Notes: generated from the letters alone by a model not told the origin. A stretch of 64,000 bases of DNA from Blepharisma stoltei ATCC 30299 (GCA_965603825.1 CBFDEM010000025.1:310001-374000); one strand, 5' to 3'. Shown: positions 6,144-49,060, numbered from the stretch's first letter. Program-made: numbers and translations.

Positions 6144-6295
6144 TTTTAAGTAAAGAAGAGATATTATTAATTTAATGCAAATTTTTGAGTCATTGATTTA
6201 TAAATGGCATATCTTTGTTACTAGATACTCCAAATATAAATGAAATTTTAGTTTTATAAATCCCAAAGGGGACTTATTTATTATATTAATTTTGA

Positions 6296-15777: not shown

Positions 15778-17622
15778 TTATTTATTAGATATTGGGTGAT
15801 TTTTATAAATTATATGATAAATTGGCTTTTTATTGAAAATATAAATTTAATTTTGATGATTTAATTCTCTATCTTTTAGTCAAAATTTATAAATTTGTAA
15901 AATAATGATCATTTTCTTATTTTTATGCATAATGGAACAGGCAAGCAAACATTTTCTTTGAATTTATACTATCACTACTACATAAGCTCATAAAGCCATC
16001 CATAACTACAAAAGCACGCTCCCAGCTTGATTTATGATATAATAGAGCTACATTTAAACAAAAATTATTTCGTAAATGGCAAGAAGTTTCTAAAAGACCT
16101 CTCTATTCCTATCTGTATTATTTAGAATCAGGGCGTGCTATGCTTAGTTTTACTATTCCGATGCTTATCATGATTTAGGAGAAGCAAAAGGATTTCGAAT
16201 TAACATAATTAAAAAAAAGGAATAGCGAAATAAGTTCACAAAAATATCTATCGTCCAACTAGAAGGATAATCCATTATTAATGCAATCTTACAGGATAAA
16301 CTAGGGGAGAACAGCACCTATAATCTAGGAATTCATAACAGAATTAGTTAGAGTTGATCTTTATCAAGCTAAAAAAATCTGGATACCCAGGGTCTGCTTT
16401 CTTAAAATAAAACTTCTGAATTCAGGATTTTTAAAATTAGCAGCTGTCTTAAACTTGAAATCCTATAGTCATTACTTTAAAGCAGTAATCTTCAAATTTT
16501 ATTTAATTAAAAGCCCAATTATTTTTAAGTAATCCATTATAAATGCTAAATTGTAAAAATTAATTGCTTTTTTTACCATTTTTTAACTGAGAGCTTTCCA
16601 TGAAATTAAAATTACAGATAATATAATCTCTTTAGTTTAAAACTTGGTGTTTTATTCATAAGTATCTCAATTAAAATCATCGTAAAGATATGGGCCAAGT
16701 TTGCTTGCGAGGTAATGAATTAATTTTTGGTTCAATATGAACTATGCCTCTACACTAGTTGCATCAAATTTTTGAAAAAAACTGATGAATGCAATACGTG
16801 TAGCAGCTTAGAAACTCTGAAGAACTTGGCTTGCAATTCTACATATTTGGATGATTCAAGAAGTGAAAGAGAATGATCGTCCAAAAGCTGATAAATCGCT
16901 GGACCAAAATTTTGATGTTTTTCTAGAGAAAGGCTTGGATCATAAGCATATGAATTATCAAGAAAGAGTAAAATAAGTGAATTGTACTAAGAAGAACGTA
17001 ATAATAAATCTGTAGGGCTGAGAAGATGTCAAAATAATTCGCAGAGCAGTTCTCTAGCAGATAGGAGACTTAGGAACTTAAGCAGAAAATGATAGATCTT
17101 GTATATGGGTTGAGCTTAAATGTTAGGTTGATGAGTCTATAATTGTAATACAGATTTAAATGAGCTTTTTGGTCTTACTGGATAAATTTTTGAAGAAATA
17201 ATTTATAAATAAATTTTAAGCAAAGAAGAGATTAATTAGCAAGTTAATCTTTAGCTATTTGATAATTCGAATAATAAATTATAATAGACTTAATGCTGGA
17301 TATCTCTTCGATTACAAAATAACTAAATATTTATTAATTGTAGCTAATTAATTATCAAGTATTTAAAATTAACTTAAATAGAAAATTTCTTTTATACATT
17401 TACTTTTATTTAAAATATAAAAAAACTTTAAATTACTAAATGCTGTATAAGTAATATTATTTTGAGATTTAATTTTCACTAAGTTATAAAATGTTTGATG
17501 TGATTCTCAGCAATATCTCTTATAGAGTCTATATAGATTTATTTTATAAACTGAATTATTTTTTACTCCTCGTTAAGCTTACATTAATTAGAGTAGACAC
17601 AAAATTAAGAATAAAAGGTTAT

Positions 17623-20600
17623 TTAAGCCTTAGATTTGCTTGTTTCCACCGGAGGATAAGCTTGAATGATGAAATACCTGACAATCATGTAAATTGTTTC
17701 CATAATAAAGATCTCAATTAAGATTCCCCATAAGAAGCTAACAGCCCAGTACCCACTCCATTTATGGCAGAAGTCATAGCTTAGCATCACAATTCCAACA
17801 ATAGATCCAATGAGAATGGCAACTCCAAGAGTCACTGCAGCTGCTGACCATTGTGGAGCTTTAGTTCTATCAATGCTAAACGCAACAACCATAAAGATTT
17901 CAACAGGGATTGTAATAGCTAAAGCCAAAATCATATACCCAAAGTAGTTTCCTTCATAGTCATCAAACAATGTCTGAGTTGCTGTTTCGCTTCCTGAGTT
18001 GATATCTTCAAATCCAAAGTACAGCAATCCTTCAAGCAATAGTTCAAAGATGATGACTACAACCAAAGTGAAGAGCCTTGCTACTCTCGAGAATGTTGGC
18101 CTATAATAGAATATTCCAAGAGCTAAATGGCCTTCAATTAATTCTTGAAGCTCATACTTAACTTCATCCTCAGGCTTCTCATCATTTGATGGTCCTCCAA
18201 TTTGTTGGACTATTGAGTTTTCAGTCAAATCAATTTCTTGCGACTCAACAACTTCATCCTCTGAACTGCCAGACTGTCCGCTTTCAACTGACTCTTCTCC
18301 TTGGGATGCATGAATGCTTATATCATGACGCATTAGTCCTCGCTCAGTTGGTCTTGGAGAATGGGATGGTGAGTTGTGAGGCACATTCCTAGTTTTGATC
18401 TCAGTAGCTGCAGGGTGGCTAATTCTGTCGATAATCACCATAATTGGGGCCAGAATCAAGCCAATAAACAAAGTGACTACAAGGATGTAGAGAGGGGCGT
18501 AGTTATCGTCACAGCTTGAGCTACTAGTTGGTACATAAGGAGGTGGATTATCGCTAGGGTTGATCTCTACAAGTTTGTACATTGAGAAATGGTAGACCTT
18601 GACTTTGACTGTTTGATCTTCGTTGTTGATGCTTGAAACCTTGCAGTTTGACTCAGTCCAATTTGAGCTTGTTTCATTGTAGTATTGGCAGCCCCACACC
18701 ATTCCTTCAGAAATATTCTTGTAGAAAGGCAGCTCAATGAGGAATGGATAATCAGTTGACGAGTATGGAACATAAGTTTCATCATTAATTGTAAGAGTGT
18801 AGTCTTTGTATGTGCCTGAATTTCCAAAGCTGAATAAAGCGATATCAGAATAGCTATCGTTTGAATATCCCTGGTAGAAATTAGCTCTCATGTTCATAAT
18901 ACTATCATCATCAAATTCAAGGATGCTAGGATAAGTAAGAATTTTACTGTTAGTATATTCCTTAGTTTTATTCTCCATATCTTTTCTGAAATTTCTATCT
19001 TTATAAATCTGGACATTATCAGTATTTTGATTTCCACTTAGCGATGATTGAGTCACTAGGTCATCATGGGTTGCTTTTACAGCCCAAGTAAGATAGAAGT
19101 CATTGACGTACAAAACTGATTTTTCAAAGCTTTTATCTGAGAAGCTAGTGCTATTTCCATAATTCAAATAGCTCTCACCTATCAAAACCACTGTATTCAT
19201 ATTATCTTGGCTTGGGTAAAGTGTATTGTAAGTGGTCAAAATGCTATTAAGCCAAGTTATCAACTGTTCGTACATACTAATGCTCATTAAATCAGTTTGG
19301 CTGGTCATAGAGTAAACAGATCCCAGCAGAGACTGAAGTAAATTGACTGTCATGCTGCTTTGGGTTTGGACATAAGACTGCAAATCACTCCACATCTTTG
19401 CAAACAAAGAACTATCAATTGTAGCTCCTGAGCATATCAAAGTAATAGTAGATGGGATATTATCTGGATCAAGAGTCATGGACAGGTAAGTATCCATCAA
19501 CGTGCTAGTGTCTAGACGCCTTCCAGGTGAGTATTTGCTAACTGTAAGTTTAGAAGATGAGTAATCTTCGCAAGTATCAAGCTGGTCACAAACATGGACT
19601 GAAATAACCTGCTCGCCTGAAGACAGTTTGGATGAAATTTGGCTTTCTTCAGTGGTAGATCCTATAGTGTATTTCGAGTTTGATCCAGATAGAGAGTACT
19701 TGTACGTGTAAAGAAGTGGATAGTCTTCATCATCACGATCAACGCAGCCACTTATTGAAATTGTAAAAGTATCAATTAAAGCCATTCCAGTTGTTGGCGA
19801 CACAGCTAATGCTCCTGAGCAAGATGCTCCTAAGTTAACTGAGACAGACAAGTCAACGCTTAAGCTTACACTGTTAGAGTCTGTTATCTTCAAGGTGAAT
19901 ACATATGCCATTCCATCACTCATTGTCCCAGAAGGAATTAAAAGAGACGGAAGATTATTTGGTGAAATTGAAATCGATAATCCAGATTTTTGAGTCCATA
20001 TAAACGTAGAACCTTCGCTTGAGGAAACACTTGCTGAGTATTTGTTCTTATTCTGGCTGCTGGCTTTTGTAGCAATAGCTGGTATTTCAATTGAGCTAGA
20101 AGTATCAGCATCTAAGACATTGAGAGTTATGGTTAAGCTTGCTGTTCTAGTATCTTTCGATATTGTGCAAGTTATATCCCATTCAGCACCCTTTACAATC
20201 TTTGCTGAAGGAATAGTAAGTGCGCTATTTGCTTCATTGCTTAGTAAGATTGAGCCATCTGCACCTTTGCATGTCGACCCATCTTCGTGATTAGCACAGG
20301 TCCAAGCATAAGTAAGACCTGAAGAATCATCTGGATCTTTGGACTTATCAGCATTGACGGTATAATCTTTGGATGAAGAAATTTGTCCGCTACCTTTAGA
20401 CAACTCAATATATAGAGGAGAAGATGTAACTGTAATAGAAACTGTAGCACTACCAGTAACTGTTGTTCCACTATTGTCTTGAGAAGCAGTTGCTGTGAAA
20501 GAATATGGACCTCCAGCAGTAAACGTGTTCTTAGGTATCGATAATTTTTGAGTTGTAGTGCTTGAAGCAAGAGAAGATGCTATACTATTATCTGTGGTTG

Positions 20601-23600
20601 AAACATAAGACCATTTCCAAGATATGGCGCTTGTTGAGCCTCCACAAACTGATGTCACTTTAGCTTTCACTTCTTTTTTATCAGAAGCTTTCATTGATAC
20701 TGAGCTGCCTGAGTCAAATGAAACGGATAGAGACTGTTGAGGAGAAACTGATGTTACTACGGATGCCGAGCTTGTTGTTTCACTGAGCCAATTTTTGATT
20801 GTCACAGTCACCGTTAAAGTTGCATCAGAAGATACTGAGGAAAGTTTGTCTCTAGTAATTGTTAAAGATGATGATGTTTGCTTTTCAGCCCAAGACGACA
20901 AACTTGAAAGAGCAGGAGACATTATAGCTTTCCAAGTATAAGTGAAATCACCTCCAAAAGACCCAGTAGACTTATCAGATGAGTAAAGGAGTGAGTCACT
21001 TCCACATCCAAGAGAGATAGATTCTGGGCCTGATAATTTTGCAGTTGGACTTGTGTTTGATCCCATGGCTATTGAAACACTTAATGCTTGATAGTTTGTT
21101 GTACATGTATCTTTTGTATCTTTAAGAATATATGTGCCATCTAAATCAATAGAGTCATTTCTTAGCTTGAATCCCGAGCCTAAGGCAATTTTCAAATTCT
21201 TTGAGTCAGTCCAAGAGCAAATAGGGTTGGTTCCCATCATAATATAAGAATCATAAGTTAATGTCTTGGAGCAAATTGGATCTGCTGAAATATCTATTGG
21301 AACCTTAAATGTTATAGTCACAGAAGTGTACGAAGAACTATATGCTGCGCTTACTACGTCTGAAGGTGCAAGATATTTCTTGCACACAACACATTTGCCA
21401 TTTGAATAAGTATAGCCAGAGTTACACTGACAGCTTTTTGAGGCTGAATCATATGAAGAATTGGCAGTGCATGCACAAGTTGTTCCAGTTAGCTCTGCAT
21501 TCGTAATGCATACAGAGCACTTATTGCCATCATTAGCGTCACAAGAAGTGCAAAGATTGTTGCATGTTGCTATACAGTTGTTTGAAGAGTTCAGAGTATA
21601 GCCAGTATTGCAAACACATAGACCATTCGATACTGATGCATTTGCCTTGCAAGCTGTACAAACTGTAGCAGATGTGCATTTAGAGCATGAAGTTGGACAT
21701 TGAGTGCATTTGCCACCAGATGGATAATAGCCATCATTGCATGAGCATGTGCTATCATTTGAATTTTTAGTTGCATTATCAACACAAGCAGTGCATGCTG
21801 TTGCAGTTGTGCAAGATAAACATTGATTAGTGCATGACTTGCAGGTGTCTGTATCTAAATAGCTGGTAGATGAGCAGGCGCAAGTTGATGTTCCAGATCC
21901 CTCAAATGTTGATGTGCATGTTGTGCAAGTTCCATAACTAGTGGTAGAGCAAGTATCACAGTGAGCCAATGAGCATTTGCAAGATGATGTTGTAGCATCC
22001 CAACTAAATCCAGACTTACACTCTTGGCATGTTCCATATGATGTCGTTGAGCAAGTCTTGCAGTTACTAATTGAGCACTCGCAAGATTTTGACGAGTCGC
22101 TAAAAGTAAACCCAGATTGACATGTATCGCAATTTCCATATGTGGTTGTTGAACAGGTTACACAATTAGCAATTGAGCACAAACATTTAGATGAAGCAGA
22201 ATCCCAGCTAAACCCGGATTGACAAGTATCGCAAATTTGTGAATCTGATCCTGAGCATGCTTGACAATTTTCAACTGCACATGTAGCAGTGCAATATCCA
22301 GACGTCAACTTATATCCGTCAGCGCATGTTTCGCAATCATTAGAGTTATCAGCTGCACAAGTCTTACAATTATTCTGGCCATCTGTGCATAGGCAAGATC
22401 CTGATGTCAGTGTCGTCCCTGAATCACATTTTGAGCAATCACCTGAGTTATCAGCTACGCAAGTCTCACAATGGTACTTTCCAGCTGTACATACACAAGA
22501 TCCTGATGACAAATCTGTTGCTGAATCACATGTGCCACACGTTGTGCTATCCGAACAGGTAGTACAATGGTTGCTGCCAGCTGTGCATTTAGGTGAGCAA
22601 GTGTTTGGAGATGTAGAAGATACTGCGTCGCTTTCTGAAGTGCAAGACCCGCAAGTAGTGCTATCTGAGCAAGCCGCACAGCCGTTTGAACCAGCTGTAC
22701 ATTTAGGTGAGCAAGTGTTTGGAGATGTTGAAGATACTGCGTCGCTTTCTGAAGTGCAAGACCCGCAAGTAGTAGCATCTGTGCAAGTTGCGCAGCCGTT
22801 TGAGCCAACTGTGCATTTTCCTACACACTTGTTTCCGGATACTATATCGCTTTCTGAAGTGCAAGACCCGCAAGTAGTGCTATCTGTGCAAGTCGCGCAG
22901 CCATTTGAGCCAGCTGTGCATTTAGGTAAGCAAGTATTTGGAGATGCTGAAGATACTGCGTCACTTTCTGAAGTGCAAGACCCGCAAGTAGTAGCATCTG
23001 AGCAAGTTGCGCAGCCGTTTGAGCCAGTTGTGCATTTAGGTGAGCAAGTGTTTGGAGATGTTGAAGATACTGCGTCGCTTTCTGAAGTGCAAGATCCGCA
23101 AGTAGTAGCATCTGTGCAAGTAGCGCAGCCGTTTGAGCCAACTGTGCATTTAGGTGAGCAAGTGTTTGGAGAAGTTGAAGATACTGCGTCGCTTTCCGAA
23201 GTGCAAGACCCGCAAGTAGTGTCATCTGTGCAAGTTGCGCAGCCGTTTGAGCCAACTGTGCATTTTCCTACACACTTGTTTCCGGATACTATATCGCTAT
23301 CTGAAGTGCAAGACCCGCAAGTAGTGCTATCTGTGCAAGTTGCGCAGCCATTTGAGCCAGCTGTGCATTTAGGTGAGCAAGTGTTTGGAGATGTTGAAGA
23401 TACTGCGTCGCTTTCTGAAGTGCAAGATCCGCAAGTAGTGTCATCTGTACAAGTTGCGCAGCCATTTGAGCCAACTGTACATTTAGGTGAGCAAGTGTTT
23501 GGAGATGTTGAAGATACTGCGTCGCTTTCTGAAGTGCAAGACCCGCAAGTAGTGTCATCTGTGCAAGTTGCGCAGCCGTTTGAGCCAACTGTGCATTTTC

Positions 23601-26600
23601 CTACACACTTGTTTCCGGATACTATATCGCTTTCTGAAGTGCAAGACCCGCAAGTAGTGCTATCTGTGCAAGTTGCGCAGCCATTTGAGCCAGCTGTGCA
23701 TTTTGGTGAGCAAGTGTTTGGAGATGTTGAAGATATTGCGTCACTTTCTGAAGTGCAAGACCCGCAAGTAGTAGCATCTGAGCAAGTTGCGCAGCCGTCT
23801 GAGCCAGCTGTGCATTTAGGTGAGCAAGTGTTTGGAGATGTTGAAGATACTGCGTCGCTTTCTGAAGTGCAAGATCCGCAAGTAGTAGCATCTGTGCAAG
23901 TTGCGCAGCCGTTTGAGCCAACTGTACATTTAGGTGAGCAAGTGTTTGGAGATGTTGAAGATACTGCGTCGCTTTCTGAAGTGCAAGACCCGCAAGTAGT
24001 ATCATCTGTGCAAGTTGCGCAGCCGTTTGAGCCAACTGTGCATTTTCCTACACACTTGTTTCCGGATACTATATCGCTTTCTGAAGTGCAAGACCCGCAA
24101 GTAGTGCTATCTGTGCAAGTTGCGCAGCCATTTGAGCCAGCTGTGCATTTAGGTGAGCAAGTATTTGGAGATGTTGAAGATACTGCGTCGCTTTCTGAAG
24201 TGCAAGATCCGCAAGTAGTGTCATCTGTACAAGTTGCGCAGCCGTTTGAGCCAACTGTACATTTAGGTGAGCAAGTGTTTGGAGATGTTGAAGATACTGC
24301 GTCGCTTTCTGAAGTGCAAGATCCGCAAGTAGTATCATCTGTGCAAGTTGCGCAGCCGTTTGAGCCAACTGTGCATTTTCCTACACACTTGTTTCCGGAT
24401 ACTATATCGCTTTCTGAAGTGCAAGACCCGCAAGTAGTGCTATCTGTGCAAGTTGCGCAGCCATTTGAGCCAGCTGTGCATTTAGGTGAGCAAGTGTTTG
24501 GAGATGCTGAAGATATTGCGTCACTTTCTGAAGTGCAAGACCCGCAAGTAGTAGCATCTGAGCAAGTTGCGCAGCCGTTTGAGCCAGCTGTGCATTTAGG
24601 TGAGCAAGTGTTTGGAGATGTTGAAGATACTGCGTCGCTTTCTGAAGTGCAAGATCCGCAAGTAGTAGCATCTGTGCAAGTTGCGCAGCCGTTTGAGCCA
24701 ACTGTACATTTAGGTGAGCAAGTGTTTGGAGATGTTGAAGATACTGCGTCGCTTTCTGAAGTGCAAGACCCGCAAGTAGTATCATCTGTGCAAGTTGCGC
24801 AGCCGTTTGAGCCAACTGTGCACTTTCCTACACACTTGTTTCCGGATACTATATCGCTTTCTGAAGTGCAAGACCCACAAGTAGTGCTATCTGTGCAAGT
24901 TGCGCAGCCATTTGAGCCAGCTGTGCATTTAGGTGAGCAAGTGTTTGGAGATGTTGAAGATACTGCGTCGCTTTCTGAAGTGCAAGATCCGCAAGTAGTG
25001 TCATCTGCGCAAGTTGCGCAGCCGTTTGAGCCAACTGTGCATTTAGGTGAGCAAGTGTTTGGAGATGTTGAAGATACTGCGTCGCTTTCTGAAGTGCAAG
25101 ACCCGCAAGTAGTGTCATCTGTGCAAGTTGCGCAGCCGTTTGAGCCAATTGTGCATTTTCCTACACACTTGTTTCCGGATACTATATCGCTTTCTGAAGT
25201 GCAAGACTCGCAAGTAGTGCTATCTGTGCAAGTTGCGCAGCCATTTGAGCCAGCTGTGCATTTAGGCGAGCAAGTGTTTGGAGATGTTGAAGATACTGCG
25301 TCACTTTCTGAAGTGCAAGACCCGCAAGTAGTAGCATCTGAGCAAGTTGCGCAGCCATTTGAGCCAGCTGTGCATTTAGGTGAGCAAGTGTTTGGAGATG
25401 TTGAAGATACTGCGTCACTTTCTGAAGTGCAAGACCCGCAAGTAGTAGCATCTGTGCAAGTTGCGCAGCCGTTTGAGCCAACTGTACATTTAGGTGAGCA
25501 AGCGTTTGGAGAAGTTGAAGATACGGCGTCGCTTTCTGAAGTGCAAGACCCGCAAGTAGTATCATCTGTACAAGTTGCGCAGCCATTTGAGCCAACTGTG
25601 CATTTTCCTATACACTTGTTTCCGGATACTATATCGCTTTCTGAAGTGCAAGACCCGCAAGTAGTGCTATCTGTGCAAGTTGCGCAGCCATTTGAGCCAG
25701 CTGTGCATTTAGGTGAGCAAGTGTTTGGAGATGTTGAAGATACTGCGTCGCTTTCTGAAGTGCAAGATCCGCAAGTAGTAGCATCTGAACAAGTTGCGCA
25801 GCCGTTAGAGCCAACTGTACATTTAGGTGAGCAAGTGTTTGGAGATGTTGAAGATACTGCGTCGCTTTCTGAAGTGCAAGATCCGCAAGTAGTATCATCT
25901 GTGCAAGTTGCGCAGCCGTTTGAGCCAACTGTGCATTTTCCTACACACTTGTTTCCGGATACTATATCGCTTTCTGAAGTGCAAGACCCACAAGTAGTGC
26001 TATCTGTGCAAGTTGCGCAGCCATTTGAGCCAGCTGTGCATTTAGGTGAGCAAGTATTTGGAGATGTTGAAGATACTGCGTCACTTTCTGAAGAGCACGA
26101 TCCGCAAGTAGTGTTATCTGTGCAAGTTGCGCAGCCATTTGAGCCAACTGTGCATTTAGGTGAGCAAGTGTTTGGAGATATTGAAGATACTGCGTCGCTT
26201 TCTGAAGTGCAAGATCCGCAAGTAGTAGCATCTGTACAAGTTGCGCAGCCGTTTGAGCCAACTGTACATTTAGGTGAGCAAGTGTTTGGAGATGTTGATG
26301 ACACTGCGTCGCTTTCTGAAGTGCAAGACCCGCAAGTAGTATCATCTGTGCAAGTTGCGCAGCCGTTTGAGCCAACTGTGCACTTTCCTACACACTTGTT
26401 TCCGGATACTATATCGCTTTCTGAAGTGCAAGACCCGCAAGTAGTGCTATCTGTGCAAGTTGCGCAGCCATTTGAGCCAGCTGTGCATTTAGGTGAGCAA
26501 GTGTTTGGAGATGTTGAAGATACCGCGTCGCTTTCTGAAGTGCAAGATCCGCAAGTAGTGTCATCTGTGCAAGTTGCGCAGCCGTTTGAGCCAACTGTAC

Positions 26601-35600: not shown

Positions 35601-38600
35601 TTGCGCAGCCATTTGAGCCAACTGTGCATTTAGCTGAGCAAGTGTTTGGAGAAGTTGAAGATACTGCATCGCTTTCTGAAGTGCAAGATCCGCAAGTAGT
35701 GTCATCTGTGCAAGTTGCGCAGCCGTTTGAGCCAACTGTGCATTTTCCTACACATTTGTTTCCGGATACTGCATCGCTTTCTGAAGTGCAAGACGCGCAA
35801 GTAGTGTCATCTGTGCATGTTGCGCAGCCATTTGAGCCAGCTGTGCATTTAGGTGAGCAAGTATTTGGAGAAGTTGAAGATACTGCGTCGCTTTCTGAAG
35901 TGCAAGACCCGCAAGTAGTGTCATCTGTGCAAGTTGCGCAGCCGTTTGAGCCAACTGTGCATTTAGCTGAGCAAGTGTTTGGAGAAGTTGAAGATACTGC
36001 GTCGCTTTCTGAAGTGCAAGAACCGCAAGTAGTGTCATCTGTGCAAGTTGCACAGCCGTTTGAGCCAACTGTGCATTTTCCTACACATTTGTGTCCAGAT
36101 ACTGCATCGCTTTCTGAAGTGCAAGACCCGCAAGTAGTGTCATCTGTGCAAGTTGCGCAGCCATTTGAGCCAGCTGTGCATTTAGGTGAGCAAATGTTTG
36201 GTGAGGTTGAAGATACTGCATCGCTTTCTGAAGTGCAAGACCCGCAAGTAGTGTCATCTGTACAAGTTGCGCAGCCATTTGAGCCAGTTGTGCATTTAGG
36301 TGAGCAAGTGTTTGGAGAAGTTGAAGATACTGCGTCGCTTTCTGAAGTGCAAGATCCGCAAGTAGTATCATCTGTGCAAGTTGCGCAGCCATTTGAACCA
36401 ACTGTACACTTAGCTGAGCAAGTGTTTGGAGAAGTTGAAGATACTGCATCACTTTCTGAAGTGCAAGACCCGCAAGTAATGTCGTCTGTGCAAGTTGCGC
36501 AGCCGTTTGATCCAACTGTGCATTTTCCTACACATTTGTTTCCGGATACTGCATCGCTTTCTGAAGTGCAAGACGCGCAAGTAGTGTCATCTGTGCATGT
36601 TGCGCAGCCATTTGAGCCAGCTGTGCATTTAGGTGAGCAAATGTTTGGTGAAGTTGAAGATACTGCATCGCTTTCTGAAGTGCAAGACCCGCAAGTAGTG
36701 TCATCTGTGCAAGTTGCGCAGCCATTTGAGCCAGTTGTGCATTTGGCTGAGCAAGTGTTTGGAGAAGTTGAAGATACTGCGTCGCTTTCTGAAGTGCAGG
36801 ACCCACAAGTAGTGTCATCTGTGCAAGTTGCGCAGCCGTTTGAGCCAACTGTGCATTTAGCTGAGCAAGTGTTTGGAGATGTTGAAGATACTGCATCACT
36901 TTCTGAAGTGCAAGACCCGCAAGTAGTATCATCTGTGCAAGTTGCGCAGCCATTTGATCCAACTGTGCATTTACCTACACATTTGTTTCCGGATACTGCA
37001 TCGCTTTCTGAAGTGCATGACGCGCAAGTAGTGTCATCTGTGCAAGTTGCGCAGCCATTTGAGCCAGCTGTGCACTTAGGTGAGCAAGTATTTGGAGAAG
37101 TTGAAGATACTGCGTCGCTTTCTGAAGTGCAAGACCCACAAGTAGTGTCATCAGTGCAAGTTGCGCAGCCGTTTGAGCCAACTGTACATTTAGCTGAGCA
37201 AGTGTTTGGAGAAGTTGAAGATACTGCATCGCTTTCTGAAGTGCAAGACCCACAAGTAGTGTCATCTGTGCAAGTTGCGCAACCGTTTGAGCCAACTGTG
37301 CATTTTCCTACACATTTGTGTCCAGATACTGCATCGCTTTCTGAAGTGCAAGACGCGCAAGTAGTGTCATCTGTGCAAGTTGCACAGCCATTTGAGCCAG
37401 CTGTGCATTTAGGCGAGCAAGTGTTTGGTGAAGTTAAAGATACTGCATCGCTTTCAGAAGTGCAAGACCCGCAAGTAGTGTCATCTGTGCAAGTTGCGCA
37501 GCCATTTGAGCCAGTTGTGCATTTAGCTGAGCAAGTGTTTGGAGAAGTTGAAGATACTGCGTCGCTTTCTGAAGTGCAGGACCCACAAGTAGTGTCATCT
37601 GTGCAAGTTGCGCAGCCGTTTGAGCCAACTGTGCATTTAGCTGAGCAAGTGTTTGGAGAAGTTGAAGATACTGCATCACTTTCTGAAGTGCAAGACCCGC
37701 AAGTAGTATCATCTGTGCAAGTTGCGCAGCCATTTGATCCAACTGTGCATTTACCTACACATTTGTTTCCGGATACTGCATCGCTTTCTGAAGTGCATGA
37801 CGCGCAAGTAGTGTCATCTGTGCAAGTTGCGCAGCCATTTGAGCCAGCTGTGCACTTAGGTGAGCAAGTATTTGGAGAAGTTGAAGATACTGCGTCGCTT
37901 TCTGAAGTGCAAGACCCACAAGTAGTGTCATCAGTGCAAGTTGCGCAGCCGTTTGAGCCAACTGTACATTTAGCTGAGCAAGTGTTTGGAGAAGTTGAAG
38001 ATACTGCATCGCTTTCTGAAGTGCAAGACCCACAAGTAGTGTCATCTGTGCAAGTTGCGCAGCCATTTGATCCAACTGTGCATTTTCCTACACATTTGTG
38101 TCCAGACACTGCATCGCTTTCTGAAGTGCAAGACGCGCAAGTAGTATCATCTGTGCATGTTGCACAGCCATTTGATCCAGCTGTGCATTTAGGCGAGCAA
38201 GTGTTTGGTGACGTTGAAGATACTGCATCGCTTTCTGAAGTGCAAGACCCGCAAGTAGTGTCATCTGTGCAAGTTGCGCAGCCATTTGAGCCAGTTGTGC
38301 ATTTAGCTGAGCAAGTGTTTGGAGAAGTTGAAGATACTGCGTCGCTTTCTGAAGTGCAGGACCCACAAGTAGTGTCATCTGTGCAAGTTGCGCAGCCGTT
38401 TGAGCCAACTGTACATTTAGGTGAGCAAGTGTTTGGAGAAGTTGAAGATACTGCGTCGCTTTCTGAAGTGCAAGACCCGCAAGTAGTATCATCTGTGCAA
38501 GTTGCGCAGCCATTTGATCCAACTGTGCATTTACCTACACATTTGTTTCCGGATACTGCATCGCTTTCTGAAGTGCATGACGCGCAAGTAGTGTCATCTG

Positions 38601-41600
38601 TGCAAGTTGCGCAGCCATTTGAGCCAGCTGTGCACTTAGGTGAGCAAGTATTTGGAGAAGTTGAAGATACTGCGTCGCTTTCTGAAGTGCAAGACCCACA
38701 AGTAGTGTCATCTGTGCAAGTTGCGCAGCCGTTTGAGCCAATTGTACATTTAGCTGAGCAAGTGTTTGGAGATGTTGAAGAAACTGCGTCGCTTTCTGAA
38801 GTGCAAGACCCGCAAGTAGTGTCATCTGTGCAAGTTGCGCAGCCGTTTGATCCAACTGTGCATTTTCCTACACATTTGTGTCCAGACACTGCATCGCTTT
38901 CTGAAGTGCAAGACGCGCAAGTAGTATCATCTGTGCAAGTTGCGCAGCCATTTGAGCCAGCTGTGCATTTAGGCGAGCAAGTGTTTGGTGAAGTTGAAGA
39001 TACTGCATCGCTTTCTGAAGTGCAAGACCCGCAAGTAGTGTCATCTGTGCAAGTTGCGCAGCCATTTGAGCCAGTTGTGCATTTAGCTGAGCAAGTGTTT
39101 GGAGAAGTTGAAGATACTGCGTCGCTTTCTGAAGTGCAGGACCCACAAGTAGTGTCATCTGTGCAAGTTGCGCAGCCGTTTGAGCCAACTGTACATTCAG
39201 GTGAGCAAGTGTTTGGAGAAGTTGAAGATACTGCGTCGCTTTCTGAAGTGCAAGACCCGCAAGTAGTATCATCTGTGCAAGTTGCACAGCCGTTTGATCC
39301 AACTGTGCATTTACCTACACATTTGTTTCCGGATACTGCATCGCTTTCTGAAGTGCATGACGCGCAAGTAGTGTCATCTGTGCAAGTTGCGCAGCCATTT
39401 GAGCCAGCTGTGCACTTAGGTGAGCAAGTATTTGGAGAAGTTGAAGATACTGCGTCGCTTTCTGAAGTGCAAGACCCACAAGTAGTGTCATCTGTGCAAG
39501 TTGCGCAACCGTTTGAGCCAACTGTACATTTAGCTGAGCAAGTGTTTGGAGAAGTTGAAGATACTGCATCGCTTTCTGAAGTGCAAGACCCGCAATTAGT
39601 GTCATCTGTGCAAGTTGCGCAGCCGTTTGAGCCAACTGTGCATTTTCCTACACATTTGTGTCCGGATACAGCATCGCTTTCTGAAGTGCAAGATGCGCAA
39701 GTAGTGTCATCTGTGCAAGTTGCGCAGCCATTTGAGCCAGCTGTGCATTTAGGCGAGCAAGTGTTTGGTGAAGTTGAAGATACTGCATCGCTTTCTGAAG
39801 TGCAAGATCCGCAAGTAGTGTCATCTGTGCAAGTTGCGCAGCCATTTGAGCCAGTTGTGCATTTAGCTGAGCAAGTGTTTGGAGAAGTTGAAGATACTGC
39901 GTCGCTTTCTGAAGTGCAAGACCCACAAGTAGTGTCATCTGTGCAAGTTGCGCAGCCGTTTGAGCCAACTGTACATTTAGCTGAGCAAGTGTTTGGAGAA
40001 GTTGAAGATACTGCGTCGCTTTCTGAAGTGCAAGACCCGCAAGTAGTGTCATCTGTGCAAGTTGCGCAGCCGTTTGATCCAACTGTGCATTTTGCTACAC
40101 ACTTGTTTCCGGATACTGCATCGCTTTCTGAAGTGCAAGACGCGCAAGTAGTGTCATCTGTGCAAGTTGCGCAGCCATTTGAGCCCGCTGTGCATTTAGG
40201 TGAGCAAGTATTTGGAGAAGTTGAAGATACTGCATCGCTTTCTGAAGTGCAAGACCCACAAGTAGTGTCATCTGTGCAAGTTGCGCAGCCGTTTGAGCTA
40301 ACTGTACATTTAGGTGAGCAAGTGTTTGGAGAAGTTGAAGATACAGCGTCGCTTTCTGAAGTGCAAGACCCGCAAGTAGTGTCATCTGTGCAAGTTGCGC
40401 AGCCGTTTGATCCAACTGTGCATTTTCCTGCACATTTGTGTCCGGATACTGCATCGCTTTCTGAAGTGCAAGACGCGCAAGTAGTGTCATCTGTGCAAGT
40501 TGCGCAGCCATTTGAGCCAGCTGTGCATTTAGGCGAGCAAGTGTTTGGTGAAGTTGAAGATACTGCATCGCTTTCTGAAGTGCAAGATCCGCAAGTAGTG
40601 TCATCTGTGCAAGTTGCGCAGCCATTTGAGCCAGTTGTGCATTTAGCTGAGCAAGTGTTTGGAGAAGTTGAAGACACTGCGTCGCTTTCTGAAGTGCAAG
40701 ACCCGCAAGTAGTGTCATCTGTGCAAGTTGCGCACCCGTTTGAGCCAACTGTACATTTAGGTGAGCAAGTGTTTGGAGAAGTTGAAGATACTGCGTCGCT
40801 TTCTGAAGTGCAAGACCCACAAGTAGTGTCATCTGTGCAAGTTGCGCAGCCGTTTGATCCAACTGTGCATTTTGCTACACACTTGTTTCCGGATACTGCA
40901 TCGCTTTCTGAAGTGCAAGACGCACAAGTAGTGTCATCTGTGCAAGTTGCGCAGCCATTTGAGCCCGCTGTACATTTAGGTGAGCAAGTATTTGGAGAAG
41001 TTGAAGATACTGCGTCGCTTTCTGAAGTGCAAGACCCGCAAGTAGTATCATCTGTGCAAGTTGCACAACCGTTTGAGCCAACTGTGCATTTAGCTGAGCA
41101 AGTGTTTGGAGAAGTTGAAGATACAGCGTCGCTTTCTGAAGTGCAAGACCCGCAAGTAGTGTCATCTGTGCAAGTTGCGCAGCCGTTTGATCCAACTGTG
41201 CATTTACCTACACATTTGTGTCCGGATACTGCATCACTTTCTGAAGTGCAAGACGCGCAAGTAGTGTCATCTGTGCAAGTTGCGCAGCCATTTGAGCCAG
41301 CTGTGCATTTAGGTGAGCAAGTGTTTGGTGAAGTTGAAGATACTGCGTCGCTTTCTGAAGTGCAAGATCCGCAAGTAGTGTCATCTGTGCAAGTTGCGCA
41401 GCCATTTGAGCCTATTGTGCATTTAGCTGAGCAGGTGTTTGGAGAAGTTGAAGATACTGCGTCGCTTTCTGAAGTGCAAGACCCGCAAGTAGTGTCATCT
41501 GTGCAAGTTGCGCACCCGTTTGAGCCAACTGTGCATTTAGCTGAGCAAGTGTTTGGAGAAGTTGAAGATACTGCGTCGCTTTCTGAAGTGCAAGACCCGC

Positions 41601-44600
41601 AAGTAGTATCATCTGTGCAAGTTGCGCAGCCATTTGATCCAACTGTACATTTACCTACACATTTGTTTCCGGATACTGCATCGCTTTCTGAAGTGCAAGA
41701 CGCACAAGTAGTGTCATCTGTGCAAGTTGCGCAGCCATTTGAGCCAGCTGTACATTTAGGTGAACAAGTATTTGGAGAAGTTGAAGATACTGCGTCGCTT
41801 TCTGAAGTGCAAGACCCGCAAGTAGTGTCATCTGTGCAAGTTGCGCAGCCGCTCGAGCCAACTGTACATTTAGCTGAGCAAGTGTTTGGAGAAGTTGAAG
41901 ATACTGCGTCGCTTTCTGAAGTGCAAGACCCGCAAGTAGTGTCATCTGTGCAAGTTGCGCAGCCATTTGATCCAACTGTGCATTTTCCTACACATTTGTG
42001 TCCGGATACTGCATCGCCTTCTGAAGTGCAAGACCCGCAAGTAGTGTCATCAGTGCAAGTTGCGCAGCCATTTGAGCCAGCTGTGCATTTAGGCGAGCAA
42101 GTGTTTGGTGAAGTTGAAGATACTGCATCGCTTTCTGAAGTGCAAGACCCGCAAGTAGTGTCATCTGTGCAAGTTGCGCAGCCATTTGAGCCAGTTGTGC
42201 ATTTAGCTGAGCAGGTGTTTGGAGAAGTTGAAGATACTGCGTCGCTTTCTGAAGTACAAGACCCGCAATTAGTGTCATCTGTGCAAGTTGCGCACCCGTT
42301 TGAGCCAACTGTACATTTAGGTGAGCAAGTGTTTGGAGAAGTTGAAGATACTGCGTCGCTTTCTGAAGTGCAAGACCCGCAAGTAGTGTCATCTGTGCAA
42401 GTTGCACAGCCGTTTGATCCAACTGTGCATTTTGCTAAACACTTGTTTCCGGATACTGCATCGCTTTCTGAAGTGCAAGACGCGCAAGTAGTGTCATCTG
42501 TGCAAGTTGCGCAGCCATTTGAGCCCGCTGTGCATTTAGGTGAGCAAGTATTTGGAGAAGTTGAAGATACTGCGTCGCTTTCTGAAGTGCAAGACCCGCA
42601 AGTAGTGTCATCTGTGCAAGTTGCACAACCGTTTGAGCCAACTGTGCATTTAGCTGAACAAGTATTTGGAGAAGTTGAAGATACTGCGTCGCTTTCTGAA
42701 GTGCAAGACCCGCAAGTAGTGTCATCTGTGCAAGTTGCGCACCCGTTTGAGCCAACTGTGCATTTGCCTACACATTTGTTTCCGGATACTGCGTCGCTTT
42801 CTGAAGTGCAAGACGCGCAAGTAGTGTCATCTGTGCAAGTTGTGCAGCCATTTGAGCCAGCTGTGCATTTAGGCGAGCAAGTGTTTGGTGAAGTTGAAGA
42901 TACTGCATCGCTTTCTGAAGTGCAAGACCCGCAAGTAGTGTCATCTGTGCAAGTTGCGCAGCCATTTGAGCCAGTTGTGCATTTAGCTGAGCAGGTGTTT
43001 GGAGAAGCTGAAGATACTGCGTCGCTTTCTGAAGTGCAAGACCCGCAAGTAGTGTCATCTGTGCAAGTTGCGCACCCGTTTGAGCCAACTGTACATTTAG
43101 CTGAGCAAGTGTTTGGAGAAGTTGAAGATACTGCGTCGCTTTCTGAAGTACAAGACCCGCAAGTAGTGTCATCTGTACAAGTTGCGCAGCCATTTGAGCC
43201 AACTGTGCATTTACCTACACATTTGTTTCCGGATACTGCATCGCTTTCTGAAGTGCAAGACGCGCAAGTAGTGTCATCTGTGCAAGTTGCGCAGCCATTT
43301 GAGCCAGCTGTGCATTTAGGCGAGCAAGTATTTGGTGAAGTTGAAGATACTGCATCGCTTTCTGAAGTGCAAGACCCGCAAGTAGTGTCATCTGTGCAAG
43401 TTGCGCAGCCATTTGAGCCAACTGTGCATTTAGCTGAGCAAGTGTTTGGAGAAGTTGAAGATACTGCGTCGCTTTCTGAAGTACAAGACCCGCAATTAGT
43501 GTCATCTGTGCAAGTTGCGCACCCGTTTGAGCCAACTGTACATTTTGCAGAGCAAGTGTTTGGAGAAGTTGAAGATACAGCGTCACTTTCTGAAGTGCAA
43601 GACGCGCAAGTAGTGTCATCAGTGCAAGTTGCGCAGCCGTTTGATCCAACTGTGCATTTACCTACACATTTGTTTCCGGATACTGCATCGCTTTCTGAAG
43701 TGCAAGACGCGCAAGTAGTGTCATCTGTGCAAGTTGTGCAGCCATTTGAGCCAGCTGTGCATTTAGGTGAGCAAGTGTTTGGAGAAGTTGAAGATACTGC
43801 GTCGCTTTCTGAAGTGCAAGACCCGCAAGTAGTGTCATCTGTGCAAGTTGCGCACCCGTTTGAGCCAACTGTGCATTTAGCTGAGCAAGTGTTTGGAGAA
43901 GTTGAAGATACTGCGTCGCTTTCTGAAGTGCAAGACCCGCAAGTAGTGTCATCTGTGCAAGTTGCGCACCCGTTTGATCCAACTGTGCATTTTGCTACAC
44001 ACTTATTTCCGGATACTGCATCGCTTTCTGAAGTGCAAGTTCCGCAAGTAGTGTCATCTGTGCAAGTTGCGCAGCCATTTGAGCCAGCTGTGCATTTAGG
44101 CGAGCAAGTGTTTGGTGAAGTTGAAGATACTGCATCACTTTCTGAAGTGCAAGACCCGCAAGTAGTGTCATCTGTGCAAGTTGCGCAGCCATTTGAGCCA
44201 ACTGTGCATTTAGCTGAGCAGGTGTTTGGAGAAGTTGAAGATACTGCGTCGCTTTCTGAAGTGCAAGACCCGCAAGTAGTGTCATCTGTGCAAGTTGCGC
44301 ACCCGTTTGAGCCAACTGTACATTTTGCAGAGCAAGTGTTTGGAGAAGTTGAAGATACTGCGTCGCTTTCTGAAGTGCAAGACCCGCAAGTAGTGTCATC
44401 TGTGCAAGTTGCGCAGCCGTTTGAGCCAACTGTGCATTTTCCTGCACATTTGTTTCCGGATACTGCATCGCTTTCTGAAGTGCAAGACGCGCAAGTAGTG
44501 TCATCTGTGCAAGTTGCGCAGCCATTTGAGCCAGCTGTGCATTTTTTAGCTGAGCAAGTGTTTGGAGAAGTTGAAGATACTTCGTCGTATTTTGAAGTGC

Positions 44601-45633
44601 AAGACCCGCAAGTAGTAGTATCTGAGCAAGTTGCGCACCCGTTTGAGCCAGCTGTACATTTTGCGGAGCAAGTGTTTGGAGAAGTTGAAGATACTGCGTC
44701 GCTTTCTGAAGTGCAAGACCCGCAAGTAGTGTCATCTGTGCAAGTTGCGCACCCGTTTGAGCCAACTGTGCATTTAGGTAAGCAAGCAATTGGATATGCT
44801 GAAGATACTGCGTCGCTTTCTGAAGTGCAAGACGCGCAAGTAGTGTCATCTGTGCAAGTTGCGCAGCCGTTTGAGCCAGCTGTGCATTTTTTAGCTGAGC
44901 AAGTGTTTGGAGAAGTTGAAGATACTTCGTCGTATTTTGAAGTGCAAGACCCGCAAGTAGTAGTATCTGAGCAAGTTGCGCACCCGTTTGAGCCAACTGT
45001 GCATTTAGGCGAGCAAACTACTGGTGATGACGATGTTAATGCGTAATCATTTGAGTTGCATTTGGTGCAGTCATCACCTGAACATGTCTGACAATGATTT
45101 TGCCCGCCTGTGCACGCTAAATGCCTTTCTTGCTTCTTTGCATTATTTCTTTTATCTTCATTATGGGTAGAGTTTTCAAACATTTGAAAGAATGAGCTAT
45201 TGTTAGATTTCTCTGATTGCATATCATTCCTTCATTCCCTTTCATCTTCATAATGAGTAATGCTTTCTTCATTTAGGAGCTTTTCGTCATATCTGGATTC
45301 TGCTTCCATTAGATTTGCTTTACTTGATTCATTTGCTTCAGGTGGAATATTTTTATGAGGTTCGGCATCTTCTTGAATCTGAGAAAAATCTGGTTTGCTA
45401 AGTAAATCAGAAGAAGCTTCTCCTCGTTTGGTTCTATTCCCTCCAACTTTGTCATCCTTGTGACGAACGGTGCCTTCTTGGACCACATGATGGATGATTT
45501 CTGGGCTTTCGCCGGTTGAGCTAGAGTCAAAGTTGGGATTATTTAAGCCTTTGGTTGTTTCTGAGGTGATTTGTCCTGCAGCGTGAAGTAGCTGAAGGAT
45601 GAGAAGAGACAAAAACAGCAAAAGCTTTGACAT
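17623..45633 (-). CDS. Giant polycystin-1/REJ-like surface membrane protein, 9,336 aa (signal peptide, about 200 Cys-rich repeats, furin/EGF-like repeats, REJ-like region, GAIN/GPS, 5 TM)
   Basis: ORF 45232..45633 (signal peptide MSKLLLFLSLLILQLLHAAG) joins ORF 17623..45222 in frame through TGA(Trp) 45232-45234 (ERE-W-RND-MQSEK). The REJ-like segment includes SKDPDDSSGLTYAWTC...VSPTTGMALIDTFTISISGCVDRDDEDYPLLYTY. The GPS-like segment is WGCQYYNETSSNWTESNC...VYHFSMY, followed by TM1. HLALGIFYYRPTFSRVARLFTL resembles the polycystin-1 H..LSIF...FTRVQRL motif, and four further TM helices follow. Confidence 0.88.
22560..45010 (-). repeat. Coding tandem array: about 200 units of 114 bp (38 aa) or 105 bp (35 aa) in a 780-bp higher-order repeat
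   Basis: Units are CT(V/A/T)GSNGCATCTDDTTCGSCTSESDAVSSTSPNTCS(P/A)K and CTAGSNGCATCTD(D/S)TTC(A/G)SCTSESD(A/V/I)VSG(N/H)KCVGK. Short units recur at alternating 333- and 447-bp spacing. Confidence 0.97.
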
Positions 45634-48943: not shown

Positions 48944-49060
48944 CGAGGAGTAAATCATTGTAAATTATAGTTTTTTATGCGACAATTTAATTGAGATTTT
49001 TTATTTCATTGGGTATATTTTTGAAGAAATAATTTATAAATTATAGCGAGAAGAGTAAAC

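Follow-up and report, generated by a model that had tools for sequence, protein, structure and literature searches.

Coding frame and transcription

The window (the whole 64,000-nt stretch of Blepharisma stoltei DNA analyzed here) carries on its minus strand a complete coding frame at positions 17623 to 45633, the 28,011-nt reverse complement of which comprises 9,336 codons and a TAA stop (17623-17625). The protein, as computed from the translation, has 9,336 residues, ∼917 kDa (unmodified), 1,300 cysteines, and a pI of ∼4.05. The initial annotation had proposed one continuous frame of this length, and this is borne out; the minus strand is open throughout, and the sole in-frame stop-like codon besides the TAA is a TGA at codon 134 (45232-45234). 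With a 28-kb frame in a genome of 30 to 38% GC, a chance origin is excluded. The published B. stoltei genome (41 Mbp) uses UGA as Trp and has introns of 15 or 16 bp (PMC9942806). Under translation table 11 the same ORF shortens to 17623-45222 (9,199 aa), and reading TGA as sense lengthens many ORFs across the window.

Translation begins at an ATG (45631-45633) in an A-rich context, followed by a signal peptide recognized by hydropathy and sequence (aa 1 to 21; 45571-45633) and a hydrophilic, acidic leader (aa 22 to 173; 45115-45570) that carries the TGA-encoded Trp134 and ends, as had been predicted, in ERHL (aa 170 to 173). The further claim that the signal peptide is visible only when UGA is read as Trp is supported by RNA contigs that run across this codon, by retention of the TGA at the identical codon in a partial duplicate of the gene, and by paralogs, in which TGA codons align twice with the near-invariant W8444 and once with W9292 (n = 13 aligned TGA codons). 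Both UGA as Trp and the signal-peptide start are therefore supported. Two GTA...TAG matches within the coding sequence (one of 15 nt and one of 16 nt) were rejected as tiny introns, since the frame and the cysteine pattern run through both and excision of 16 nt would break the frame. An antisense 7,585-aa ORF on the plus strand (22289-45046) was rejected as a repeat by-product, because variation concentrates at minus-frame third codon positions, and no other frame joins the signal peptide, the REJ region, and the transmembrane (TM) helices. The neighboring genes are eukaryotic and include CDC14-like, calpain, and RING genes, which together with the spliced 15-nt introns led us to reject a bacterial (Mollicutes, code 4) source.

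Three of the contig sets compared with the window (X1, X2, and X4) are RNA assemblies, as inferred from their omission of two 15-nt introns (at positions 49296 and 49477) and from their gaps between genes. Over 44979-45626, X1 and X4 match the window without a difference and pass unspliced across the codon-134 TGA, and 97% of sampled words from 17500-22500 are present in X1 to X4; X2 lacks the 5′ leader and contains the 3′ end. We note that these are assembled contigs that give no strand, expression level, or single full-length molecule, and that the repeat cannot be traced through them. Over its final 1,100 aa the protein shares 82% identity with a Blepharisma japonicum transcript, which stops at the same residue. 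We regard the gene as macronuclear, intact, and transcribed, from a B. stoltei-type ciliate.

A cysteine-rich stalk under purifying selection

Most of the protein is a homogeneous array (aa 174 to 7714; 22492-45114, minus strand) of ∼203 six-cysteine units, each 38 or 35 aa long, in the pattern C-x6-C-x2-C-x6-C-x2-C-x11/14-C. The core found by TRF lies at 22576-45016 (period, 114 nt; 201.2 copies), with higher periods of 333 and 447 nt. Counting by cysteine pattern gives 199 regular units (143 long and 56 short) together with a few variants, and every regular unit has exactly six cysteines, in good agreement with the ∼200 near-identical six-cysteine units described initially. Long (L) and short (s) units are ordered as LLs or LLLs, and LLsLLLs forms a 780-nt higher-order repeat present in ∼29 copies. 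Beyond the array, the unit was found only in a 2.4-kb partial duplicate (C25, 434.6 to 437 kb).

At the DNA level the 143 long units comprise 132 distinct sequences but encode only 42 distinct peptides, minor alleles fall at codon positions 1, 2, and 3 in the proportions 95/69/530, and codon differences among units are synonymous in 498 cases and nonsynonymous in 143. This predominantly synonymous variation indicates that the array is under purifying selection at the protein level. The longest exact duplicate within it is 401 nt, and 780-nt super-units grow smoothly less alike with distance, from 94% identity for neighbors to 85% for those 7.8 kb apart.

The array is followed by divergent CxxC repeats of the VSP/furin type (aa 7715 to 8084; 21382-22491, minus strand). 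The stalk length of ∼7,500 aa given initially thus holds for the homogeneous array (∼7,540 aa, 22.6 kb in frame) and not for the cysteine-rich region as a whole, which extends to aa 8084. The assignment of the stalk to CxxC surface-antigen-type proteins is plausible, and rests on an indirect chain of matches: the divergent repeats match the stalk of a paralog (BLASTP, E 1e−13), and the paralog stalk in turn matches Pfam VSP (PF03302) at E 1.2e−44. The 35/38-aa units themselves match the VSP-positive stalk only weakly (E 0.11), with cysteines in register. Neither the units nor the divergent repeats gave a Pfam match even at E 10, and the 741 aa that follow M138 gave none either. A feature search of the ESM Atlas with the stalk gave weak leads (0.76 to 0.81, with furin-like/VSP clusters at only 0.76), and a homologous-protein search with a 298-aa stalk piece returned no matches but is uninformative, as the word index saturates. 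Serine and threonine make up 37% of the stalk, from which O-glycosylation is inferred to be probable.

REJ, GAIN, and GPS region

Between the stalk and the membrane, the initial annotation recognized a REJ-like region, which is confirmed by a Pfam REJ match (PF02010; 19477-20658, E 1.3e−33, 116.7 bits against a cutoff of 25, profile positions 3 to 436 of 452) that is also recovered in a six-frame genome search. Profiles and AF2 strands, together with the Pfam match, place a series of Ig-like (PKD-type) beta-sandwich modules here (aa 8271 to 8699; 19537-20823, minus strand), and the region matches the PKD domains of KIAA0319L by profile (E 1e−15). The GRRL motif expected near 19515 is present (19513-19524, minus strand) in the linker that joins the last Ig-like module to the GAIN helices, and R-x-L is the family consensus at this position; cleavage there is only putative.

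An AF2 model of the C-terminal 1,100 aa (pLDDT 84) predicts a GAIN domain (aa 8712 to 9026; 18556-19500, minus strand; pLDDT ∼90), with a helical subdomain followed by a beta sandwich. The top eight VIA-align matches are all GAIN domains of adhesion GPCRs (Z 14 to 19.1), including the crystal structures of BAI3 (4dlo_A, Z 19.1), BAI2 (8oek, Z 18.8, root mean square deviation [rmsd] 3.9 Å over 262 aa), and latrophilin (4dlq_A, Z 16.5), and profile searches match the GAIN domains of ADGRF1 and ADGRL3 (E 0.002 to 0.006). A GPS-type site, suggested initially as HF/S near 18585, is found at 18583-18591 (minus strand) as H9015-F9016/S9017, in the turn before the last GAIN strand of the predicted model (between model strands 772 to 777 and 782 to 788), and the putative tethered peptide begins S-M-Y-K-L-V. 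The GPS residues read are H9015, F9016, S9017, and Y9019, and there are no cleavage data. Phe occupies position −1, where the canonical residue is Leu. In the family columns, His is present in 46/57, Ser or Thr in 45/57, Phe or Tyr at +3 in 49/57, and the two cysteines in 57/57 and 55/57. The Pfam GPS model has no match in the 9,336-aa protein; it matches 10 paralogs at the homologous position, and these 10 canonical matches lie ∼0.9 kb downstream of their own REJ matches, the same spacing as here.

A polycystin-1-type membrane module

A first TM helix (TM1, aa 9046 to 9072; 18418-18498, minus strand), identified by hydropathy, model, and structural match, leads into a 110-aa cytoplasmic loop (aa 9073 to 9182; 18088-18417), and four further helices (TM2 to TM5, aa 9183 to 9325; 17659-18087; pLDDT >90) follow an H-L-x-x-G-(I/L)...F-x-R motif that precedes TM2. 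All five helices are where the initial annotation had them, by hydropathy and by model. It had also described an acidic loop without a PLAT domain, and this description fits: the loop is Ser/Glu rich with a net charge of −13, is predicted to be disordered (model pLDDT <50), and occupies the position of the polycystin-1 PLAT domain, and there is no Pfam PLAT match in the protein or anywhere in the genome. The chain ends with an 11-aa cytoplasmic tail and the stop (tail at 17626-17658), and TM6 to TM11 are absent. The reported lack of the channel-like part is likewise upheld, as the protein, its relatives, and the B. japonicum transcript all stop just after TM5. There is no Pfam PKD_channel match in the protein, and the genome has at least 35 such matches, all in separate genes. 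No seven-TM secretin-like domain follows the GAIN domain, five TM helices being counted.

In a Foldseek search with the full 1,100-aa model, Ig arrays crowded out other matches to domains such as those of polycystin-1 (PC1); a domain-level search and a separate AF2 model of the TM module (pLDDT 81) overcame this. In an exhaustive VIA-align comparison with 48,161 PDB chains, the five-TM bundle matches human PC1 (8z6b_A, Z 18.2, rmsd 4.0 Å over 186 aa) across residues 3071 to 3610, which correspond to polycystin-1 TM1 to TM5; the next best chain has a Z of 6.0, and GPCR chains reach 5 to 6 at best. The top 10 Foldseek matches with the TM module are all PC1 chains, and its best Atlas match is a metazoan PLAT-bearing cluster. 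A profile hidden Markov model of the module found no polycystin among PDB sequences at E values up to 10, and the CorA entries topping that search (E 0.03) are regarded as chance matches. The polycystin-1-type module proposed initially is thus recovered as a fold, and the kinship to PC1, which rests on a predicted model, is structural and without a sequence-level match.

A large paralogous family

A six-frame search of the genome (41.46 Mb, 64 contigs) finds at least 45 REJ loci, and at least 25 loci in the genome have the REJ-GAIN-5TM tail. The gene is not unique, as the initial annotation could not have known, but one of a large, undescribed paralogous family. Among the best 150 representatives, 57 (from Blepharisma, Stentor, and metagenomes) share REJ through TM5, with 20 to 48% identity over the last 1,100 aa, and their C termini all coincide with this one to within a few residues. 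Giant paralogs of ∼5,700 and 6,700 aa likewise combine a signal peptide and leader with a Cys-rich stalk. Paralogs and Stentor coeruleus proteins (CAG9319790.1, OMJ71464.1, OMJ78776.1, and OMJ67594.1) have the same tail ending right after TM5, whereas their stalks are built of repeats other than the 38/35-aa unit. The loci are clustered and accompanied by pseudogene fragments, and many copies are broken (TAA/TAG-interrupted matches). Database labels for the relatives are only "unnamed," "hypothetical," or "EGF-like / PKD/REJ-like / GPS domain-containing." Pfam searches with whole paralogs and with the tails of four relatives returned no families, despite identities of up to 47% to the REJ-positive tail; we attribute this to filtering of biased sequence and not to true absence. 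A homologous-protein search with the tail gave three matches, all from Blepharisma, and its blanks elsewhere are uninformative.

Interpretation

We interpret the gene as encoding a giant type I surface protein of the PKD1/REJ family, the receptor-only half of a polycystin-1, and place the probability of this overall explanation, including the proposed mechanism, at roughly 0.75. The identity and architecture taken alone are highly probable; the cleavage-and-tether mechanism is tentative, at somewhat below even odds, as both cleavage and function are inferred. There are no functional data, and the most likely role is that of a cleavable adhesion or mechanosensing tether. A disulfide-bonded, probably O-glycosylated stalk would project a few hundred nanometers from the cell or ciliary membrane, a length that is itself inferred. 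The GAIN domain may cut itself between F9016 and S9017, which would leave an 879-kDa N-terminal fragment held noncovalently on a 36-kDa membrane fragment. Pulling or binding of the stalk could then displace or shed the N-terminal fragment and expose the tethered peptide to the five-TM bundle, which might signal alone or through a separately encoded PKD2-like channel.

It is possible instead that function resides in the stalk, as a glycocalyx with a protective or antigenic role or as a variable surface antigen similar to Giardia VSPs and ciliate immobilization antigens, with REJ-GAIN-5TM serving mainly as an anchor and shedding device and not as a sensor. The VSP match of the paralog stalks (1.2e−44), the extremely homogeneous Ser/Thr-rich units, the many clustered members with varied stalks and pseudogene fragments, and the presence of the 5′ leader in two RNA assemblies and its absence from a third are all consistent with such a coat. 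However, conservation of the membrane-proximal 1,100 aa, including the GPS and the five TM helices (20 to 48% in 57 representatives), goes beyond what an anchor needs, and known ciliate surface antigens are GPI anchored; we consider a coat or antigen unlikely, though not to be dismissed. An extracellular hair shaft is improbable. A single molecule would span a sub-micron surface or ciliary filament, with a polycystin-type anchor beside PKD2 channels and other proteins assembled around it, as in the Chlamydomonas mastigoneme, where Mstax (∼8,000 residues, with a PKD2-like TM region) spans ∼660 nm (bioRxiv 10.1101/2024.12.24.630281) and PKD2 is reported to provide the anchor (PMC7265326). The size and rod-like repeat of the protein are comparable to those of Mstax, and PKD_channel genes abound in this genome, but the anchor is of the PC1 TM1-5 type and not PKD2-like, and the stalk is Cys rich and not hydroxyproline rich. 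To our knowledge, no such hairs have been described in Blepharisma.

Two further explanations concern the gene itself. Assembly of 114-nt tandem repeats is difficult, contigs built from short-read DNA break off where the array begins (the X5 contig stops at 45077), and the copy number rests on the assembly alone, without a long-read check, so that the true unit number could be far lower or variable and the 9,336-aa size an assembly error. The units are nevertheless distinguishable (132 of the 143 long units differ in DNA, with no exact duplicate beyond 401 nt), the smooth decay of super-unit identity is the pattern of a real array and not of a collapsed or padded one, and HiFi reads underlie the published assembly (PMC9942806); an error of this kind has only a slim chance, and frame and architecture would be unchanged whichever unit number is correct. 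That the gene is decaying or untranslated, being transcribed without yielding a full-length protein, is hardly credible. The many broken copies in the family and the RNA assembly without the 5′ leader could be read this way, but 28 kb stay open in an AT-rich genome, the synonymous excess is strong, every cysteine is retained, and neither the signal peptide nor the GPS residues nor the TM helices are damaged.

Returning to the receptor-half reading, a broader proposal can be made, although it is speculative and we give it low odds. Heterotrichs may keep the PC1 receptor half (REJ-GAIN-TM1-5, without PLAT) as a free-standing, greatly expanded family with the TRPP half encoded separately, and the 917-kDa member may be a GAIN-cleavable tether, stiffened by disulfides and of sub-micron length, that signals pull or contact to the five-TM bundle and perhaps to PKD2-like channels. 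If true, the 11-TM polycystin-1 of animals would be a fusion of two modules able to work apart, and the 917-kDa member would be a candidate for the mechanoreceptor or cell-contact receptor yet to be identified in Blepharisma and Stentor. The family also bears on the origin of the 11-TM protein. Polycystic kidney disease raises the questions of what PC1 TM1 to TM5 do and how these helices are affected by GAIN cleavage and by the tethered stalk peptide, and a natural family with the receptor half only, without PLAT or channel, would make that half studiable alone, in hosts (Stentor and Blepharisma) amenable to RNAi and to assays of mechanical response. The 22.6-kb in-frame array also offers a clear case of a huge coding tandem repeat under purifying selection, and the protein would rank with Mstax among the longest predicted rod-like protist surface proteins.

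Relationship to known systems

The polycystin-1/PKD1 family (human PC1, PKD1L1 to PKD1L3, PKDREJ, and sea urchin SpREJ1 to SpREJ10) shares with this protein the Ig-like (PKD-type) modules and REJ, a GAIN domain and GPS just before TM1, a helical bundle that superposes on PC1 TM1 to TM5, and a large ectodomain with N-out topology. The sea urchin SpREJ proteins have 1 to 11 TM segments, and 5 of 10 members have PLAT (PMC1934368). In contrast to polycystin-1, the ciliate family member has a disordered acidic TM1-TM2 loop in place of PLAT, lacks the TRP-like TM6 to TM11 and the coiled-coil tail, and has a GPS with two cysteines instead of four and Phe instead of Leu at −1; its ectodomain is dominated by ∼7,900 aa of CxxC repeats, whereas that of PC1 has LRR, C-lectin, and 16 PKD repeats. 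Adhesion GPCRs (such as latrophilin, BAI, CELSR, and GPR56) have in common with it the GAIN fold (Z 14 to 19), the H-x-S/T-x-F motif with a hydrophobic tethered peptide right before TM1, and a very long adhesive-type ectodomain, but the membrane part here is a five-TM PC1-type bundle and not a seven-TM domain.

Chlamydomonas Mstax is likewise a giant protist protein with an extended repetitive ectodomain and a polycystin-family membrane anchor. It differs in its PKD2-like (channel-type) TM region, hydroxyproline-rich glycosylated repeats, and lectin domains, and it is without the REJ, GAIN, and PC1 TM1-5 modules that are all present here. Giardia VSPs and ciliate CxxC surface antigens have tandem Cys-rich CxxC modules as in the stalk, but VSPs carry a single TM helix with a short tail, in contrast to the five helices here, and neither they nor the ciliate antigens have REJ, GAIN, or a polytopic tail.

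Results

The giant gene is confirmed as one continuous frame, as the initial annotation had it: the reverse complement of window 17623-45633 (28,011 nt) holds 9,336 sense codons followed by TAA, and the single other stop-like codon within it is a TGA at codon 134 (45232-45234). With UGA read as tryptophan, the frame begins at an ATG whose context is A-rich, followed by a classical signal peptide that, as anticipated, is seen only under that reading; translation with the bacterial code moves the ORF start to M138 (45222). The published macronuclear genome of Blepharisma stoltei ATCC 30299 is 41 Mbp and AT-rich, with UGA encoding tryptophan and introns of 15/16 bp (PMC9942806); the genome searched here is an assembly of 41.46 Mb in 64 contigs, in which the window spans C25:310001-374000. 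Taking TGA as sense lengthens or newly creates many ORFs in the window (e.g., 46805-48943 and 50468-53221). The leader TGA is retained at the identical codon in a partial duplicate of the gene, within a conserved R-E-W-R-N-D context, and of 13 TGA codons aligned from five paralogous loci, 3 coincide with a tryptophan of the giant protein, two of them at the near-invariant W8444. GC content is 47 to 48% over 22 to 44 kb, compared with 30 to 38% in the flanks.

Most of the frame is a tandem array (22576-45016) that Tandem Repeats Finder resolves into 201.2 copies with a period of 114 nt and higher periods of 333 and 447 nt. The initial count of about 200 near-identical six-cysteine units agrees with the 199 regular units in the assembled protein, which divide into 143 long ones (38 aa) and 56 short ones (35 aa); each has exactly six cysteines spaced C-x6-C-x2-C-x6-C-x2-C-x11/14-C. 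They are ordered long-long-short and long-long-long-short, forming a 7-unit higher-order repeat of 780 nt, and identity between these super-units declines steadily from 94.2% for neighbors to 85.4% at 7.8 kb apart. The 143 long units reduce to only 42 distinct peptides, although they differ enough in DNA to give 132 distinct sequences; their minor alleles number 95, 69, and 530 at the first, second, and third codon positions, and codon differences from the consensus are synonymous in 498 cases and non-synonymous in 143. The array is thus old enough to have diverged, with its protein under purifying selection, and the minus frame is the coding one. A plus-strand ORF of 7,585 aa (22289-45046) is not a gene, as it is the minus frame whose third positions vary; the plus-strand frame is open because the repeat unit happens to have no stop in that frame and is a by-product of the repeat.

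Directly after the array lie divergent CxxC repeats (aa 7715-8084), which align with the stalk in a paralogue of 5,727 aa (E = 1e-13). The homogeneous units match that stalk only weakly (E = 0.11), with cysteines in register, and no Pfam model matches them; from sequence comparison alone, we interpret them as a derived variant of the stalk's repeat type. The region that had been called REJ-like is recognized by Pfam as a REJ domain (aa 8326-8719; E = 1.3e-33), and a profile of 57 relatives aligned over the last 1,100 aa matches the PKD domains of KIAA0319L (E = 1e-15).

An AlphaFold2 model of this 1,100-aa tail, built on the same alignment and numbered from aa 8237, has a mean pLDDT of 84 and predicts Ig-like sandwiches (residues 35-463), seven helices (476-618), a beta sandwich (638-788), TM1, a disordered loop, and four further TM helices. 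The profile matches adhesion-GPCR GAIN domains only weakly (E = 0.002 to 0.05). When the model was compared by VIA-align with Foldseek's candidates, the top eight chains were all GAIN domains covering residues of about 500 to 790, including BAI3 (4dlo_A; Z = 19.1), BAI2 (8oek; Z = 18.8, rmsd 3.9 A over 262 aa), and latrophilin-1 (4dlq_A; Z = 16.5), with CELSR1, GPR110, ADGRL3, CD97, and GPR56 making up the remainder; Ig matches are lower (Z ≤ 11.6). H9015-F9016-S9017 occupies the turn that joins the penultimate strand to the final one, and the surrounding GPS-region columns are conserved across the family (Cys in 57/57 and 55/57, His in 46/57, Ser/Thr in 45/57, and Phe/Tyr at +3 in 49/57). Ten paralogues have canonical Pfam GPS matches about 0.9 kb downstream of the REJ match, and the spacing is the same in the giant gene. 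The predicted fold supports a GAIN domain, with the proposed HF|S as a putative cleavage site. GAIN domains have been noted in Tetrahymena by Araç et al. (PMC3321182).

Below the GAIN chains, the next structural matches of the tail model (m1143b0e5511c, residues about 502-792; Z = 12.8) are 8glv_AE of Chlamydomonas and 9fqr_Hn of bovine sperm, both from reconstructions of axonemal doublet microtubules. They suggest a ciliary protein with a GAIN-like fold.

The five-TM module, modeled alone on 55 sequences, has a pLDDT of 81, with TM helices above 90. Polycystin-1 (PC1) chains, taken from PC1/PC2 complexes, fill all ten of Foldseek's best places (rmsd 3.8 A; E-values from 3.5e-3 upward), with probabilities of 1.00 for the top eight and 0.98 to 0.99 for the other two; below them, probability falls under 0.15. 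In an exhaustive VIA-align search of 48,161 chains, the sole match above Z = 8 is PC1 8z6b_A (Z = 18.2; runner-up, 6.0), superposing model residues 35-312 on chain residues 3071-3610 with an rmsd of 4.0 A over 186 aa. This segment of PC1 comprises TM1, PLAT, and TM2-TM5, with TM6 beginning near 3666. No match to PC1 was found at the sequence level, so kinship of the module, which had been proposed as a truncated polycystin-1 unit, rests on predicted structure. In the Atlas, the module is closest to a metazoan cluster, 70% of whose members carry PLAT. Pfam finds no PLAT in the giant protein or anywhere in the genome, and the 110-aa TM1-TM2 loop, disordered in the model with a net charge of -13, is acidic and PLAT-free as described. 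The protein ends 11 aa beyond TM5, lacking the six-TM channel-like part as had been noted; the 35 PKD_channel matches in the genome are all in separate genes.

The runs X1, X2, and X4 are RNA assemblies, since 15 nt at each of 49296 and 49477, retained in the DNA run X5, are missing from them and they show intergenic holes (46040-46815); the RNA contigs confirm both 15-nt stretches as introns. X1 and X4 each include a leader contig (44997/44979-45626) with zero differences, unspliced through the TGA and ending 7 nt inside the frame start. At the other end, the four runs X1 to X4 all contain 97% of the sampled words over 17500-22500, and a protein from the Blepharisma japonicum transcriptome shares 82% identity across the final 1,100 aa, with the same terminal residue. 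Both ends of the gene are thus transcribed; a single 28-kb molecule, its strand, and its level cannot be demonstrated from contigs. A separate small transcript just upstream (45669-46020; X1, X2, and X4) is present in X2 where the leader is absent. No ORF in it is convincing, the longest being 91 codons without Met; a non-coding RNA and a tiny gene are both possible.

The upstream neighbor (46805-48943, plus strand) codes for a cyclic-nucleotide-binding ion channel (Pfam cNMP_binding and Ion_trans). RNA contigs over it and the next gene (49033-49900) carry many differences, mostly transitions, that are absent from the DNA run; a second strain or allele among the RNA samples may account for them. 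The other neighboring genes are of ordinary eukaryotic kinds and encode a CDC14-like dual-specificity phosphatase (1193-2485), a RING-finger protein (6290-7411), an adenylate kinase (7837-9393), and a calpain (58882-61017).

Searches of the genome give 52 REJ matches, and at least 25 loci carry the giant gene's tail; the closest of these sit on the same contig, at 83%, 77%, and 63% identity. A representative search returned 523 relatives, and 57 of the best 150 share REJ through TM5 and terminate there. All named relatives are from Blepharisma or Stentor coeruleus, with close paralogues named Blepharisma stoltei at NCBI and automatic labels such as "PKD/REJ-like" and "GPS domain-containing"; one metagenomic member lies on a gene-dense, ciliate-like 145-kb contig. 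Our literature search turned up no published description of the family. The same plan, with different Cys-rich stalks, is seen in two giant paralogues whose open frames span 5,727 and 6,696 codons. The giant gene's unit recurs only in the 793-codon partial duplicate (C25:434.6-437 kb, on the same contig; positions 1111-3492, plus strand, of G000:C25:433500-437500), on the opposite strand to the giant gene, with a leader, about 13 units, and some divergent repeats, and no signal peptide. Upstream of it, in other frames, are Cys-rich ORFs built from a different type of repeat.

Two family loci (G000:C54:612-626 kb and C58:568-577 kb) lie within about 7 to 10 kb of PKD2-like (PKD_channel) genes, which are on the opposite strand or upstream and unfused; chance is not excluded.

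Discussion

The observation is confirmed, and its structural interpretation as a REJ-GAIN-five-TM protein is supported. Four other accounts were considered. The protein could be a VSP-like coat protein, as the stalk of the 5,727-aa paralogue matches Pfam VSP (E = 1.2e-44), or form an Mstax-like hair shaft. The array could be over-assembled, its copy number coming from the assembly with no read check; its longest exact duplicate is 401 nt, so long accurate reads should place it. Nor are signs of decay missing from the family: some tail loci are interrupted by TAA or TAG, and the partial duplicate looks like a recombinant or decaying member. A decaying giant gene would have to be reconciled with its open frame and purifying selection.

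The evidence shows the protein's architecture, selection on its array, that both ends are transcribed, and that the GPS residues and TM bundle are conserved in the family; function is not established. We infer that a disulfide-bonded stalk, probably O-glycosylated, would extend 300 to 400 nm, an estimate from the dimensions of furin/laminin-type Cys modules without a stalk model; a rise of about 1.5 to 2 nm for each unit would yield that length. GAIN autoproteolysis would yield 879-kDa and 36-kDa fragments, and force or ligand might then expose an S-M-Y-K-L-V peptide to the five-TM bundle. This last step is modeled on the peptide exposure by force or ligand reportedly proposed for PC1 and adhesion GPCRs.

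The giant gene belongs to the PKD1/REJ family as a variant form. The TM1-TM5 fold is common to PC1 and the model of the giant protein, whereas PLAT and TM6-TM11 are present in PC1 only. In PKD1 proteins, TM1-TM5 are a recognized N-terminal domain and TM6-TM11 a TRP-like domain (PMC8357825), and members of the sea-urchin PKD1 family range from 1 to 11 TM segments, only half of the members carrying PLAT (PMC1934368).
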